Below are positions 22,960 through 63,628 of a stretch of DNA of 64,000 bases, piece after piece (the first letter of the stretch is position 1; every line of letters starts with the position of its first letter). The stretch covers positions 9,521 through 73,520 of the forward strand of contig NIVC01003856.1 of NCBI GenBank assembly GCA_002269645.1. The letters are read 5' to 3'. The notes beneath the pieces are model-generated. The model ran no database searches and was not told where the DNA came from. It saw only the letters and a program-made list of their open reading frames with translations. The stretch is from Macrostomum lignano. Taxonomy: Eukaryota. The position numbers were made by a program, and so were the translations under genes.

Positions 22960-53845
<30,886 letters not shown>

Positions 53846-54644
53846 GCCGCTGGTTTGATGTTTTTAGCCTTCAAACTGGTTTTTAACCTTCTTTTCCCTC
53901 GCTTTCTTACCATTGTATTTCAACAGGGTTATGTTCAAGCCTACTTAAGTCTTTATTAAGGCCACAAAAAAGTTTATTGCCTAAGCAGTCCCCTGAAATC
54001 CCGGCTCTCTTTGGGGTGCCGAACTTCTGTCTATGGCCAAAACCGGAAAACCGCGGCAGTGTGCTCAATACTGACGAGGCCGCCGCTTCCAGTTCTCATG
54101 AAATCCCAGTCTCACGCCTCCGTGTCTGGTGTTCGCCCCGCTCCACTATTTAACCAGGAAATCGTTTATTTTATTACTCTTTTAACCAAGAATTGTTTTC
54201 GAATTTTTCAATAGAATATTGTTTAACTGACAATATTAATTGCTTGCGGATTTGGCTGGCTTTGTAAGCCCCCCCCCCCCAGCCTCTCTGCTCAGTATTC
54301 CCGGCTAGGCGCCCAGTGTTAATCAGCTGTTTCTGTGGCGAAGTTTTAGTTCAGTACAATCAGCTTTTGTTAAGCGTATTTCTATGCACGTGAAGCATCC
54401 GTGATTTTGCTCAGATATTTGTCGGCACTCCTGTACCCAATATTATATTTGAGCATTATATATTTACTAAATTGTAACAACACGCTAACCCCAGGCTGTG
54501 CGAATCATTGTGCACTTGCGTCCTTGACTGTGCCACTAGTAGAGCTGCTAGGTCTGATGTTCACTGACTTCCCGCGCTTAGCAGTGGCTACAAGCGATTT
54601 GTACTTTTGGTTTATTAGAAGACACAACTGTATGGTTTGCACTT

Positions 54645-55665
54645 TTGGGATCGTAGGCTACAGGAACTGTACTTTTAGGGTTGTAGGCTACAGAAACTGT
54701 ACTTTTAGGGTTGTAGGCTACAGAAACTGTACTTTTAGGGTTGTAGGCTATAGAAACTGTACTTTTAGGGTTGTAGGCTACAGAAACTGTACTTTTAGGG
54801 TTGTAGGCTATAGAAACTGTACTTTTAGGGTTGTAGGCTATAGAAACTGTGCTTTTAGGGTTAGCTACAGAAACTGTACTTTTAGGGTTGTAGGCTATAG
54901 AAACTGTACTTTTAGGGTTGTAGGCTACAGAAACTGTACTCTTAGGGTTGTAGGCTATAGAAACTGTACTTTTAGGGTTAGCTACAGAAACTGTACTTTT
55001 AGGGTTGTAGGCTATAGAAACTGTACTTTTAGGGTTGTAGGCTACAGAAACTGTACTCTTAGGGTTGTAGGCTATAGAAACTGTACTTTTAGGGTTATAG
55101 GCTACAGAAACTGTACTTTTAGGGTTGTAGGCTACAGAAACTGTACTTTTAGGGTTGTAGGCTATAGAAACTGTACTTTTAGGGTTAGCTACAGAAGCTG
55201 TACTTTTAGGGTTGTAGGCTATAGAAACTGTACTTTTAGGGTTGTAGGCTATAGAAACTGTACTTTTAGGGTTGTAGGCTACAGAAACTGTACTCTTAGG
55301 GTTGTAGGCTATAGAAACTGTACTTTTAGGGTTAGCTACAGAAACTGTACATTTAGGGTAGTTAGCTATAGAAACTGTACTTTTAGGGTAGTTAGCTATA
55401 GAAACTGTGTACTTTAAGGGTAGTAAGCTACAGAAACTGTGTACTTTAAGGGTAGTAAGCTACAGAAACTGTGTACTTTCAGGGTAGCTAGCTATAAAAA
55501 CTGTACTTTTTGGGTAGTAAGCTATAAACTGTACGTTTAGGGCAGTAAACGCAGCGACTGTACTTTTAGGGTAGTTAGCTATAGAAACTGTACTTTTGGG
55601 GTAATTATCTATAGCAACTGTGTACTTTTAGGGTAGTAAGCTACAGAAACTATGTACTTTTAATG
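54645..55665. repeat. 30-bp minisatellite
   Basis: Unit ACTGTACTTTTAGGGTTGTAGGCTA(C/T)AGAA, about 33 copies, degenerating at the 3' end. Confidence 0.95.
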
Positions 55666-56157: not shown

Positions 56158-56466
56158 GACTGACTGACTGACTGACTGACTGACTGACTGACTGACTGAC
56201 TGACTGACTGACTGACTGACTGACTGACTGACTGACTGACTGACTGACTGACTGACTGACTGACTGACTGACTGACTGACTGACTGACTGACTGACTGAC
56301 TGACTGACTGACTGACTGACTGACTGACTGACTGACTGACTGACTGACTGACTGACTGACTGACTGACTGACTGACTGACTGACTGACTGACTGACTGAC
56401 TGACTGACTGACTGACTGACTGACTGACTGACTGACTGACTGACTGACTGACTGACTGACTGACTG
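56158..56466. repeat. Perfect (TGAC)n microsatellite
   Basis: About 77 uninterrupted units. Confidence 0.98.
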
Positions 56467-56860
56467 AATTATCACTCTGGGCAGGAGATTGGGATTAGAT
56501 CATGGCTGGGGATATTCCCCAGCGCATCCGGCTTGAGATCAGCTTCCTTGATCGGGCTTTCAATTTTTCTCCTAATCCTATCGAGCTCTGCCGGTCCGGC
56601 TCGGGAGCGGCACTGAGCTGAGAGATGCACCCGCATGAATCTCATTAGACTGGCCGTCCGGTTAAAGGATGCCCACGAGCTCGGCTGCCCCGGCTGGCTG
56701 CACCTGTAATTTCCCGTCCTTTGTCCACCAGCGACCCCATTGGACGGTTTCGGCATTCGTCCGGCCGCTGCCGCCCTCTTCCAATATTTAGAAGGGTAGC
56801 CGGCTCTGCTCCCGCCGGAGATCTGCTTCTGCTGCTCTCTGCTGACCGCCGTATCAGAAG

Positions 56861-57324
56861 ATGAACTTCTTCAGCCTGCGGCTGCTGCTTGCCTGCTGTC
56901 TCATGGCCGCCTTGGTTGACTGCAGGGCCCCGTTTGTGCCAAAGTTGCTCCAAGATCCGGACCGCTTGCTTTCTATGACCAGATACGGTGAGTGCTATGA
57001 CTGAGGGTGAGCTGTGTATGACTACAGACACTGACAGCCATGACTGAGTGGTGAGCTGTGTATGACCGGTCAGATCCTGAGAGCTTTCGTGGCAGCCTTT
57101 TAAATTGACCTAAAACTTGAAGCGCTCATGGATTCTGAGCCCGCAGTCATCCTAGCAACAAAATCCTCATTTTCCCAGAGGCCATGATAGCGATCATGAG
57201 TGAGGTGTGCGAGGACTCGTGCCGCTATTCGCACCCCGGCGTACCCGAGTGCTCGGGCTACTACACGGGCAACTGGCACATGTACAACGACTGCGTGTGC
57301 ACCTCCTGCAGCTTTTTTGGTTGA
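56861..57324 (+). CDS. Secreted 90-aa cysteine-rich peptide precursor, CS-alpha-beta defensin-like
   Basis: Exons 56861-56987 (donor GTGAGT) and 57179-57324 (acceptor TTTCCCAG) join in phase 1 to give MNFFSLRLLLACCLMAALVDCRAPFVPKLLQDPDRLLSMTRYEAMIAIMSEVCEDSCRYSHPGVPECSGYYTGNWHMYNDCVCTSCSFFG. Confidence 0.75.
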
Positions 57325-57631: not shown

Positions 57632-58400
57632 TGTCTCTTCTCAGCTCTCTTCTCTATAATCTCCTCTCTCCTTTCCTCTCCTCTCCTCCCCCCTCCCTTC
57701 TCTCCTCTCTCCTCTCCTCTTCTCTCCTCTCCTCTCCCTTCTCTCTTCTCCTTTCCTCTCCTCTCTCTTCTCTCTCCTCTCCTCTTCTCTCCTCTCCCTT
57801 CCTCTCCTCTCCCTTCCTCTCCTCTCCCTTCCTCTCCTCTCCCTTCCTCTCCTCTCCCTTCTCTCCTCTCTCCTCTCCTCTTCTCTCCTCTCCTCCCTTC
57901 TCTCCTCTCCCTTCCTCTCCTCTCCCTTCTCTCCTCTCCTCTTCTCTCCTCTCCTCCCTTCTCTCCTCTCCCTTCCTCTCCTCTCCCTTTCTCTCCTCTC
58001 CTTTCTCTCCTCCTCTCCTCCCTTCTCTCCTCTCTCCTTTCCTCTCCTCTCCTCCCCTCTCCCTTCTCTCCTCTCTCCTCTCCTCTTCTCTCCTCTCCTC
58101 TTCTCTCCTCTCCCTTCCTCTTCTCTCTCTTCTCTCCTCCTCTCCTCCCTTTTCTCCTCTCCCTTTCTCCTCTCCTCTCTCTTCTCTCCCTTCTCTCCCT
58201 TCTCTCTTCTCCTTTCCTCTCCTCTCTCTTCTCTCTCCTCTCCTCTCTCTTCTCTCTTCTTCCTTCTCTCCTGTCCTCTTCTCTCTCTCCTCTCTCCTCT
58301 TCTCTCCTTTCCCTTCACTCCTCTCCTCTCTTTTCTTCTTTATTGCCTCAATTCTCCTTTCTCCGATCTCTTTTCGTTCTTCTCTATTCCTTCTTCTCTC
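57632..58400. repeat. Polypyrimidine/polypurine tract (CTCTC/CTTCTC words)
   Basis: About 770 bp almost entirely C/T on the plus strand. Confidence 0.95.
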
Positions 58401-59838: not shown

Positions 59839-62800
59839 CTAGCCCAGCTGCTGCTGCTGCGATGGCCCGTTGGCGCTGCTGCCTCGGCCAGCAGCCTCGG
59901 CCCGGAGCCTGATGCCGAACTCCATCTTGCCGGTGATGTAGCGGAACACAGCCAGCCAGGCTCGGCTCACTGCTCTGCTGTAGCTGGGGCCCAGCTTCTC
60001 TTGCAGGGCAAAGCTAACGGCGGGCCACAGCCTCTGCATAGGAATCGGGGCAGCGGCTCGAATTGAAAAGCTGCAGGTGAACTCAAGCTCAGCATATTAA
60101 TTGCCACTTGCTCAAGGAGGAGAGCAGACCAGCTCAGCTGTTGGCGCATTCTGACTCTTGAGCCAAACTACCCTGGGGTTCGAGTCCGTTTGCCGATCAC
60201 CCTGACTTGCAGCAGTGCCCAAAACCTTAGTGCAAACTCACTACATCCCATCTCACCCATCTAATTCTCAAGGTGACTCTGAGGTTCAAGCACATGTGGG
60301 TGCATTCGTGGGGCTGTAAATGGGGTTGTAGCCTAGAGGTTGGAGCGTCGAACTCACGACTAAAAGGTCGCGTGTTCGATTCTCGACTCACTCGAAACAA
60401 TTTGTGTCCTTGGGTAAGACACTTAACTCTGCATTGCTTCAGTTTATCTATTGCTGTAAAATGGGTGCCAGCATTAGCTGGGGTAACAGAGGGTGTGTAT
60501 GGCGACCTCCCAGTCCTTGGACTGAACAGCCGTACGCAGCCTTCAGATGCGCCGCGCAATACCTGCGGCTGAGCTGTCGGTTGCCTATCTGGCCCAATTG
60601 GCCAGATACGAGCGTCATAATATATTATTATTAATACTACTAGTATTGTTACTATCATTATCATGATTATGATTATAATTATTGCTACTGTTATTCATGG
60701 GCAGCTAAAAGCAGAACGCTGCACTCTCACATTCAAGCAAATTTTGACATGAAATCCCCATTTTATCCCCATTATCCCCTGGAATCCCAAGAAAGAGACT
60801 GCATGGGATGACAGCTGTCTCGGCGTTTCTCTAGTCAGCTGGTCCGACCAGTTTTTGCTTCCAGTCAGACTGATGGAAGGAGAATGCTTCCATTATCTTT
60901 TTAAGCATTGTTGAGATAAGTTGAGCTACAACTGAATTTGTGTTATGTGCTCTTACTGCCTTGGTGAGTTTAGAATAACTTACAAGAATTTTGCGGACCT
61001 TTAGGGATCAACACAACGGGAATTCACCTCTCCATCTTTGTACAAAACTTTTTTTCGTATATTTTGGCTGTTTTCTGATAGAATTCGCTGATAAGCTGCA
61101 GTTTGGCATGGAGCTGAAGTGCTCCATGCTAATCCTGCAGATCTCTGCGGATCTATACCAGTTGAACTCAGTACTTCAGGCTTCACAAATCTGTTGGAAT
61201 TGCCACGCGTGAAGGCTTGTTCCCCGCAATTTCTTCAGCTCATAAATATTTACAGCTTTGGCGGACTGTCGACAAAATCGCAGTTTATGAGCGCAAAGGG
61301 GCGATGCAGCTCGCACTAGAAGATTTTATTGCTGCTCAAAGGAAGCGCCACTGAAAGTTCCAATCGGCTGCCAAAATGGAAATTTCTCTGCGCTTCCGGT
61401 CTGATCTCAGACCTGAGATAGATTTTTTTGTCTAAGGAGTCAGAAGCCAGAATATAAATTCAACTGTGGATAAAGGCATTACTGGGGTTGGACAAAATAT
61501 TCTGCAGACAAAGGATGGGTCTTCGATTGAAAATTCTAACTCCCAAAAGCTCTTCCCCTATTGTACCCACATTGAATAACGTGCAATAAACTAGCTGGCT
61601 AACTCTCCTGCCCGAAGCTCTACCCCAAATGTACATTGACTGGCGTGCAATAAACTGTCTGGCTAACTCCCCTGCCCGAAGCTCTACCCCAATTTACATC
61701 GACTAACGCAATAAACTGGCTGGCTAACTCCCCTGCCGAAGCTCTACCCCCAATGTACATCGACTAACGCAATAAACTGGCTGGCTAACTTCCCTGCCCG
61801 AAGCTCTACCCCCAATGTACATTGACTGGCGTGCAATAAACTGGCTGGCTAACTCTCCTGCCCGAAGCTCTACCCCCAATGTACATTGACTGGCGTGATG
61901 GCGTGCAATAAACTGGCTGGCTAACTCCCCTGCCCGAAGCTCTACCCCCAATGTACATTGACTGGCGTGCAATAAACTCGCCAACTGTACTGTTCAAAGC
62001 TTTTTTCTGCATTGTAATTTTTTCATTACCTCTGGTTTGGCTCTGCCCCCCCCCCGCGGCCAAAGAGAAGCGAGTTTACTAACCATGAGGTGCTCCGGCC
62101 TTACTTGGAAGGCCCAGTGTGCCTGGCCCAGAGCCAGCAGCACTGAATTGAGCATCAGCGCGTCCTCCAGGCAGTCCACGGCGGCTCCCAGCGCCTGCAT
62201 CACCGCCAGGCCGTGCCGCTCCAATTTGCGCAAGTCAAATCGCTGCTGACAGCGACCGTCTGGAGCGACGCCGACGCCGCCGCCACCTCCGCTGTGCTCG
62301 GGAAGGCCGTCGCCTTCAAAATGTTCTTCCTGAGTGCCGTCGGGACACATCAGCCTGCAGAACAGGCCGCGGAGGTCGGCGTCGGTCTCGAATAGCCTGA
62401 CGATGACAGTGAGAGGAAATCAAACTGGATGAAATTTTCCTTATTTTGCCCGCCCCAATTCAATTATTTTTCTGTTCTAATCTGCTCAATCAGCGGCTAA
62501 TTTACTAATGAATCGGTAAGCTGGAGGCCACTGGAAGGTTGATTCTAATATAATTTCGACTTGAGAAAAAATATGCCGAGAGCTATACTGCTTTGCTCCG
62601 AGGATGTCCGGGTTGCTCAGCCTACTTTTGGGCCTGCTTGAAGCAAAAGCGCTCAAGTTAGATAAGGTGCAGTTAGAGGTGAGTAGAGGTGCCGGGGAGG
62701 GAGTGCAATTGTACATTGAGGTGGGTGCAGATGGCAAGGGAGTGCAAGTGTACATTGAGGTGGGTGCAGATGGCAAGGGAGTGCAAGTGTACATTGAGGT

Positions 62801-63628
62801 GGGTGCAGATGGCAAGGGAGTGCAAGTGTACATTGAGGTGGGTGCAGATGGCAAGGGAGTGCAAGTGTACATTGAGGTGGGTGCAGATGGCAAGGGAGTG
62901 CAAGTGTACATTGAGGTGGGTGCAGATGGCAAGGGAGTGCAATTGTGTGCATTGTGGTGGATGCAGATGGCAAGGGAGTGCAAGTGTGCATTGTGGTGGA
63001 TGCAGATGGCAAGGGAGTGCAAGTGTGCATTGTGGTGGATGCAGATGGCAAGGGAGTGCAAGTGTGCATTGTGGTGGATGCAGATGGCAAGGGAGTGCAA
63101 GTGTGCATTGTGGTGGATGCAGATGGCAAGGGAGTGCAAGTGTGCATTGTGGTGGATGCAGATGGCAAGGGAGTGCAAGTGTGCATTGTGGTGGATGCAG
63201 ATGGGAAGGGAGTGCAAGTGTACATTGAGGTGGGTGCAGATGGCAAGGGAGTGCAAGTGTGCATTGTGGTGGTGCAGATGGCAAGGGAGTGCAAGTGTGC
63301 ATTGTGGTGGATGCAGATGGGAAGGAATTTCACGCTGAGACATGGTTATATGATTATATGAATAAATGGAATTTGTTACAGTTGTGCGCGTAGAGTTCAA
63401 CGCTGCGAGCGCGTGTTTGCGGCTGTAGAATTAATGAAGCAATTAGCAGCCTCCAGACCTGATGAAGATTGCTATGCCTGTCCCGGCCAAGTCCAGACTC
63501 AGTAGCCGCCATGTGTCGCGCACCAGCGCCACCTGAACCGGGGTCAGGTGATTTCCAATCTGATCGTTCAGACATTGCTCGACCGACCGCAGCTGGTGGG
63601 GCCTGGTCTTGGAGCAGCCACAGCCCAT
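59839..63628 (-). CDS. Globin with N-terminal acylation motif (globin X-like), about 225 aa, 3 exons
   Basis: Exons 63628-63459 (phase 2), 62396-62084 (phase 0) and 60033-59839, which fit the conserved B12.2 and G7.0 globin intron positions. MGCGCS start, helix A LTPVQVALVRDTW, CD1 Phe (GLF), E7 His (LERHG), F8 His (GQAH), helix H AWLAVFRYI. Confidence 0.9.
60124..60194 (+). other. tRNA-like sequence (pseudo-tRNA or SINE head)
   Basis: AGCTCAG A-box-like word, GGTTCGAGTCC B box, and a possible acceptor stem GCAGAC/GTTTGC; no clean anticodon arm. Confidence 0.3.
60322..60700 (+). mobile_element. Full-length tRNA-derived CORE-SINE in globin intron 2
   Basis: A box TAGCCTAGAGG (60329), B box GTTCGATTC (60374), CORE-like TGTGTCCTTGGGTAAGACACTTAAC (60403), a body, and an ATT/TAT simple-repeat tail. 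Confidence 0.8.
61583..61978. repeat. About 62-64-bp minisatellite in globin intron 2
   Basis: Unit CAATAAACTGGCTGGCTAACTCCCCTGCCCGAAGCTCTACCCCCAATGTACATTGACTGGCGTG, about 6 copies. Confidence 0.9.
62700..63325. repeat. 39-bp minisatellite in globin intron 1, two variant blocks
   Basis: GCAAGTGTACATTGAGGTGGGTGCAGATGGCAAGGGAGT and GCAAGTGTGCATTGTGGTGGATGCAGATGGCAAGGGAGT. Confidence 0.95.

Follow-up and report, generated by a model that had tools for sequence, protein, structure and literature searches.

Locus and gene structure

The window analyzed here is a 64,000-nucleotide stretch of the Macrostomum lignano genome (GenBank assembly GCA_002269645.1, contig NIVC01003856.1, positions 9,521 to 73,520 of the forward strand). 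It contains a small two-exon gene encoding a 90-residue cysteine-rich peptide (Table 1). The gene had been proposed in an earlier note, made from the letters of the window, and what the note says of the sequence proved right to the base, with the ATG, donor, acceptor, and stop codon giving a 90-residue product. The acceptor TTTTCCCAG lies directly 5′ of exon 2, which opens with AG, and the spliced coding sequence (CDS) is 273 nt long and translates to MNFFSLRLLLACCLMAALVDCRAPFVPKLLQDPDRLLSMTRYEAMIAIMSEVCEDSCRYSHPGVPECSGYYTGNWHMYNDCVCTSCSFFG. Alternative in-frame GT/AG pairs are present, and the splice sites of the chosen pair are better than all of them. The open reading frames (ORFs) of the separate exons are 47 and 46 aa long; as the earlier note supposed, the gene is missing from a list limited to ORFs of at least 60 aa because its exons are this short. 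A CCAAT and TATA-like stretch (TATTTAGAA), about 70 nt upstream of the ATG, is a possible core promoter judged from its letters, and the second genomic copy described below is identical there, as it is in nearly all nearby DNA.

The GC contents at codon positions 1, 2, and 3 are 0.46, 0.46, and 0.80, respectively, in the spliced frame, with an intron GC content of 0.49, and the high third-position GC content shifts along with the reading frame. Pfam searches with the four overlapping ORFs, on both strands and in other frames, returned no match, and there is therefore no alternative minus-strand coding explanation.

The upstream neighbor on the same strand is a large gene for a DOCK-family guanine-nucleotide exchange factor, with a 2088-aa product containing DOCK-C2 and DHR-2 lobes A to C. 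A dense series of minisatellites lies mostly inside or adjoining the DOCK gene region. The ATG of the peptide gene lies 394 bp past the end of a perfect (GACT)77 microsatellite, and the alignment to the second genomic copy begins at the same place as this microsatellite. Low-complexity CT-rich DNA begins 320 bp past the stop codon and gives rise, on each of the two strands, to long ORFs that are spurious (266, 256, and 225 aa in all). Two tandem arrays lie near the contig end, and the final base of the window is the end of the contig.

Table 1. Features of the peptide gene and its surroundings in the window
Feature	Position	Strand	Remarks
Minisatellite series	45530-55662		Dense; individual arrays in the next five lines
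Minisatellite, 31 bp x52	45740-47361		
Minisatellite, 41 bp x15	47801-48392		
Minisatellite, 16 bp x28	50691-51144		
Minisatellite, 21 bp x35	51885-52616		
Minisatellite, 30 bp x34	54641-55662		
DOCK-family gene	up to ~53845	+	Upstream neighbor
(GACT)77 microsatellite	56158-56467		310 bp, 100% matches
Possible core promoter	56784..56796	+	CCAAT and TATA-like TATTTAGAA
Exon 1, coding part	56861..56987	+	127 nt; Met1 (ATG at 56861) to first base of codon 43; donor ACG|GTGAGT
Exon 1 product	residues 1-42	+	Hydrophobic leader 1-21, then basic, cysteine-free helical (predicted) stretch 22-42
Intron, phase 1	56988..57178	+	191 nt; GTGAGT...TTTTCCCAG
Exon 2, coding part	57179..57324	+	146 nt; residues 43-90, acidic six-cysteine domain EAMIAIMSEVCEDSCRYSHPGVPECSGYYTGNWHMYNDCVCTSCSFFG and TGA
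CxxxC (C53, C57)	57211..57225	+	In predicted helix; helix half of cysteine-stabilized-helix motif
CxCxxC (C81, C83, C86)	57295..57312	+	In or after last predicted beta-strand; strand half of the motif and putative partner of C67
Stop codon TGA	57322-57324	+	
CT-rich low-complexity DNA	57647-58331		~680 bp
Tandem array, 64 bp x6	61569-61978		Near contig end
Tandem array, 39 bp x16	62698-63325		Near contig end

Public records and second genomic copy

In a word-indexed search of 5.8 billion proteins, the 90-aa product matched "hypothetical protein BOX15_Mlig002908g1" of M. lignano from end to end at 100% identity. The exact protein is deposited in GenBank under accession numbers PAA49515.1 and PAA87550.1 (Mlig002908g1/g2) and in UniProt as A0A1I8G296, with the entry name "Secreted protein." The description of the gene as unannotated thus applies to the raw window only. 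The annotation of GCA_002269645.1 is RNA-seq based and used a StringTie/TACO/TBONE boundary pipeline (PMC5730564); a transcript assembly therefore underlies the deposited spliced model. Two genome annotations predict the gene independently of each other. On the evidence of codon-position GC content and the exact deposited protein, this is a transcribed two-exon coding gene, more than a chance ORF.

The gene sits on two contigs of the assembly, NIVC01003856.1 (the window) and NIVC01000225.1 (the second copy). The ORF of the second copy is intact, and its CDS has two synonymous substitutions, at 56890 and 56899, and no nonsynonymous change. Across the 5′ flank, intron, and 3′ flank, the copies differ by 12 substitutions and by indels that occupy 288 gapped columns of the alignment. 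The intron contains a minisatellite with a unit of about 58 to 60 bp (GACTGAG..GTATGACCAGACACTGACAGCTA..), the copy number of which is unequal in the two genomic copies. Expansion of this minisatellite makes the intron of the second copy (L001, 10128-10575) 256 bases longer, so the intron length is polymorphic between the duplicates and the protein is identical. The same DOCK-family neighbor precedes the second copy (L002, 1-6985), so the duplication spans both genes. Identity between the copies is 90 to 93% across the minisatellite series and 97 to 99.6% elsewhere. The two synonymous and zero nonsynonymous differences are too few for a dN/dS selection test, and the coding sequences are too similar (0.7% difference) for purifying selection to be provable from them.

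Protein layout

Cysteines occupy residues 12, 13, and 21 of the leader and residues 53, 57, 67, 81, 83, and 86 of the domain encoded by exon 2. The domain pattern, C-x3-C-x9-C-x13-C-x-C-x2-C followed by SFFG and the stop codon, was recovered from the spliced translation as it had originally been read. Residues 1 to 21, with a hydropathy peak at residues 7 to 21, probably constitute a signal peptide. Cleavage is likely near Cys21|Arg22 (VDC|RA); an even count of cysteines would then remain, and the site conforms to the small-residue rule for -1/-3. The hydrophobic leader and the UniProt entry name both bear out the view of the product as a secreted-type peptide.

A 31-residue, cysteine-free, mildly basic stretch separates the likely cleavage site from the first cysteine of the domain. 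A short pro-region had been suggested here; the sequence between the leader and the cysteine domain contains no dibasic, RxxR, or other recognizable convertase site, and no processing site delimits such a region. The exon 2 domain has a net charge of -5 and a pI of 4.35 (the cysteine core has a net charge of -3), and the mature region is accordingly acidic, as claimed at the outset, against a pI of 9.1 for the mussel defensin MGD-1. The ORF stops four residues past the last cysteine, with no C-terminal propeptide. Gly90 lies directly before the stop codon, and this single residue makes C-terminal amidation of the peptide possible.

Searches for relatives

Searches of the 64-kb window with tblastn, using the full peptide and the product of each exon as queries, found no paralogue besides the gene itself; every other match fell in simple repeats and had an E value above 0.3. 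In the word-indexed search of 5.8 billion proteins, the identical M. lignano protein was the sole match. An exhaustive phmmer search of 1.84 billion cluster representatives returned no homologue besides the protein itself. Pfam gave no match at an E value of ≤10, and PDB sequence searches with the full-length peptide and the mature domain gave nothing relevant and no match at an E value of ≤10. The peptide is therefore described here as an orphan in the sense that it is without a relative in the searchable libraries, in which flatworm transcriptomes beyond the annotated M. lignano are probably poorly represented; judged by sequence, the protein has so far been found in M. lignano only.

Five further phmmer matches (P0002 to P0006; E values, 5e-15 to 2e-4) were rejected. 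All are tandem-repeat proteins of 1000 to 2600 aa, and their E values are sums of weak cysteine-free matches (e.g., NGYYTGNYGLF) over 6 to 13 repeats. Short queries against a representative library can reach an E value of 5e-15 by repeat summation alone, and such values call for caution. The cysteine patterns of insulin-like, CHH/ITP, eclosion-hormone, CART, and guanylin-type peptides were also considered and dropped, as their spacings do not fit.

Predicted fold

Structures were predicted with AlphaFold for residues 22 to 90 and for the full-length protein. The model of residues 22 to 90 (mean pLDDT, 80; pTM, 0.67) has two short helices, a 20-residue helix with C53 and C57, and a two-stranded hairpin with C81 and C83 in its last strand. 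In the numbering of this model, CxxxC lies within helix 20-39 and CxC within strand 60-62; in full-length numbering, the helix spans residues 41 to 60 and the strands span residues 68 to 71 and 81 to 84. The predicted helix begins 12 residues ahead of CxxxC. The full-length model (pLDDT, 63.6) has the same topology. The hairpin is the least confident part, with a pLDDT of 66 to 69. Both models were computed from the single sequence at zero alignment depth and may reflect a learned CxxxC/CxC pattern. They show the helix plus beta-hairpin arrangement that the earlier note had set as a structural check. On these models, the fold is probably a helix pinned to a beta-hairpin, as in defensins and scorpion toxins.

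Foldseek was run against the PDB with the model of residues 22 to 90. [quoted passage not shown] The top match was the fungal defensin eurocin, at a target-normalized TM-score of 0.49 over 37 columns. Foldseek with the full-length model gave chance matches to lysyl-tRNA synthetase only, and these were discarded.

The cis-defensins, or CS-alpha-beta peptides, are defined by two parallel disulfides that tie the final strand to the helix (PMC7203481; PMC5116183). In the ten-cysteine reference array, C3, C4, C8, and C9 form the stabilized helix and the C2-C6 bond completes the fold (PMC5116183). The flatworm peptide has the cysteine positions of the stabilized helix in its sequence and in both models, with C53-x3-C57 in the predicted helix and C81-x-C83 in the last predicted strand. 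It lacks the canonical disulfide from the N-loop to the middle strand (array C2-C6), with no cysteine upstream of C53 after the leader, and Tyr71 stands where MGD-1 has Cys25.

Relation to mussel defensins

MGD-1 has disulfides 4-25, 10-33, 14-35, and 21-38 (PMC5484132), and the bridges and the MGD-1 sequence quoted in the earlier note agree with that source and with PDB entry 1FJN, respectively. The six domain cysteines align with Cys10, Cys14, Cys21, Cys33, Cys35, and Cys38 of MGD-1, so the missing pair is exactly the 4-25 bridge, as first proposed. The same register was obtained with hhalign against a five-defensin profile drawn from the MGD-1 PDB search, in which these MGD-1 cysteines pair with C53, C57, C67, C81, C83, and C86 (probability, 12.6%; P = 0.0023). 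The Smith-Waterman score against MGD-1 is 54, which is reached by 0.4% of cysteine-fixed shuffles (P ≈ 0.004), MGD-1 being a comparator chosen after the fact. In the same shuffle test against mytilin B, the P value was 0.44, and residue similarity was at chance.

Homology to the mussel defensins found no support: Pfam gave no match, the PDB gave none at an E value of ≤10, and the hhalign probability is low. For calibration, MGD-1 used as the query in this PDB database retrieves scorpion, fungal, and oyster defensins at E values of 2e-9 to 8e-4. Mytilin B fails to find MGD-1 in the PDB sequence search, and the failed search therefore counts against the defensin family proper and not against the wider superfamily. 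The peptide is without three features of the defensin family, namely, detectable homology, a cationic mature form, and the MGD precursor layout. With one defining superfamily feature absent and family homology lacking, we do not file it as a defensin. Of the defensin-like interpretation first offered, the scaffold and fold are supported in part, and defensin homology and the unannotated status are not supported.

Proposed function and alternatives

We lean toward the reading that the gene encodes a secreted, disulfide-rich helix-hairpin protein, found so far in M. lignano only, that acts outside the cell on a protein target and is not a cationic defensin; this seems to us somewhat probable. 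The leader of about 21 residues would be lost to give a product of about 69 residues, in which one long alpha-helix (residues ~41 to 60) would be pinned to a C-terminal beta-hairpin. Parallel disulfides C53-C81 and C57-C83 would do the pinning, as the cysteine-stabilized-helix motif, and a third bond, C67-C86, would tie the hairpin start to the C terminus and correspond to the optional array bond C5-C10; the pairing 53-81, 57-83, and 67-86 is inferred from the motif. Mollusc and nematode eight-cysteine peptides have bonds C2-C6, C3-C8, C4-C9, and C5-C10, the last being an addition (PMC5116183), and the resulting array would be this one minus the N-loop bridge. By binding a protein target, the rigid exported domain may work as a stable extracellular ligand or inhibitor, and its most plausible role would be that of a signal or of a secretion from a gland or the reproductive system. 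The domain is acidic and aromatic-rich, and we therefore infer protein-target binding over a membrane- or lipid-II-directed cationic mechanism, a functional proposal drawn from the charge and the modeled fold.

A more specific form of this proposal is less likely than not and can be put forward only tentatively. It holds that the peptide is the first CS-alpha-beta-type peptide to be recognized in Platyhelminthes, with the hitherto undescribed six-cysteine subset C3/C4/C5/C8/C9/C10, in which the "fourth" bond joins the stabilized helix and the N-loop bond is missing, and that its acidic surface points to a nonantimicrobial role, such as that of a ligand in mating or signaling.

By analogy with other reproductive proteins, the peptide might be a seminal-fluid or reproductive gland protein that acts on the mating partner, a special case of the preferred reading that we think rather unlikely. 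Short length, restriction to one lineage, and rapid evolution are frequent among reproductive proteins, and the gene is an orphan with a small, secreted product. The base rate also speaks for this role, as at least 64 prostate-limited transcripts of M. lignano have predicted secretory products (PMC5977470). The gene id, accession numbers, peptide words, and two 21-nt CDS stretches had no match in the text and partial supplements of the M. lignano genome paper, the seminal-fluid screen, the RNA-seq paper on three species, and the paper on sex-limited evolution. The absence of the gene id, the peptide, and the two CDS stretches from the supplements of the screen counts against the seminal-fluid role, in supplements that give no sequences or primers.

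It is unlikely that the peptide is a highly diverged true homologue of the ancient invertebrate-type or mollusc defensins (MGD/Cg-Def) that has lost the N-loop bridge and is antimicrobial. The cysteine register is identical to that of six MGD-1 cysteines, the two missing cysteines are a bonded pair, and the residues C-[SG]-G-Y...G-x-W-H...C-x-C-x2-C are shared with MGD-1 and accompany a score matched by few shuffles. The top Foldseek match is a defensin, and a phase-1 intron lies ahead of the mature domain. The stretch C-X9-C-S-G also resembles the gamma-core signature (PMC5484132). Against such descent, neither Pfam nor the PDB gives a match at an E value of ≤10, whereas MGD-1 finds relatives at values of about 1e-9 to 1e-3; the hhalign probability is 12.6%, and the net charge is -5 versus about +6. 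The precursor has a 31-residue stretch before the first domain cysteine and no acidic C-terminal extension, and its predicted helix already begins 12 residues ahead of CxxxC. Convergence is common among short cysteine frameworks. The taxa covered by the superfamily survey in PMC5116183 include no platyhelminth with a CS-alpha-beta peptide.

It is decidedly unlikely that the gene encodes a neuropeptide- or hormone-like precursor, whose C-terminal glycine would give rise to an amide (…CSFF-NH2) inside dense-core vesicles and whose disulfide-rich product would signal through a receptor. Many cysteine-rich hormones and toxins are amidated, and the glycine before the stop codon, the secretory leader, the small size, and the even cysteine count after leader removal would suit such a role. 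A terminal glycine alone is weak evidence, however, and the absence of a dibasic, RxxR, or other convertase site from the leader to the cysteine domain argues against a processed precursor. As a rule, the neuropeptide families of flatworms are conserved throughout the group, yet the search of 1.84 billion representatives yielded no relative.

The ORF could instead be young, or transcribed de novo, with no functional folded product and a cysteine pattern due to chance. Such an origin would suit an orphan without paralogue or family that lies in repeat-rich intergenic DNA between microsatellites and has two copies too similar for a selection test, but it is very improbable given the third-position GC content of 0.80 versus 0.46, the leader followed by exactly six downstream cysteines in the cysteine-stabilized-helix arrangement, the single-sequence AlphaFold pLDDT of 80, the intact state of both copies with synonymous differences only, and the independent prediction in two genome annotations.

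If the fold that the preferred reading proposes is true, the cysteine-stabilized helix-hairpin scaffold reaches the flatworms, a phylum missing from the survey cited above, and can dispense with its "completing" disulfide as long as the optional bond at the C terminus is retained. This would bear on the evolution of mini-proteins and on which bonds are truly required. For M. lignano, in which transgenesis, RNA interference, and in situ hybridization are established, the gene adds one more orphan secreted peptide. The protein is already known as a deposited hypothetical or secreted protein of this species and is not demonstrably a defensin; annotated as hypothetical and with a fold that is hinted at but unproven, it is of modest practical importance.

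Comparison with known systems

MGD-1 (1FJN) and the flatworm peptide have in common CxxxC in the helix and CxC in the last strand (both predicted for the latter) and a pair equivalent to Cys21-Cys38, as well as the local motif noted above, a signal peptide, and small size. The flatworm peptide is without the MGD-1 Cys4-Cys25 (array C2-C6) bridge, and its exon 2 domain is acidic (-5; pI, 4.35), whereas MGD-1 is basic (+5.9; pI, 9.1). Its N-terminal stretch of 31 residues and its much longer predicted helix also set it apart. In the mussel MGD precursor, the mature peptide comes immediately after the signal peptide and is followed by an acidic C-terminal extension (PMC5484132), a layout that differs from that of the flatworm peptide.

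Mytilin B (2EEM) has identical C-x3-C and C-x-C-x2-C spacings and an identical 13-residue spacing from the third retained cysteine to CxC. The residues GYY follow the third cysteine directly in mytilin B and after one serine in the flatworm peptide. Mytilin B is basic with eight cysteines, whereas the flatworm domain is acidic with six.

The best Foldseek matches, eurocin (2LT8) and long-chain scorpion CS-alpha-beta toxins, superpose over 37 to 40 columns at a root mean square deviation of ~3.5 to 3.8 Å, with target-length-normalized TM-scores of 0.34 to 0.49, all at E values of ≥3 and probabilities of ≤0.15. All of them have the canonical N-loop disulfide, unlike the flatworm peptide.

A six-cysteine precedent with a nonstandard subset of the reference array is found in the nematode peptide ASABF-6Cys-alpha (PMC5116183). 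It keeps array cysteines C3 to C6, C8, and C9, whereas the flatworm peptide would keep C3, C4, C5, C8, C9, and C10. Set beside these systems, the peptide may be described as a secreted mini-protein with the cysteine-stabilized-helix motif and, possibly, as a noncanonical variant of the CS-alpha-beta fold.
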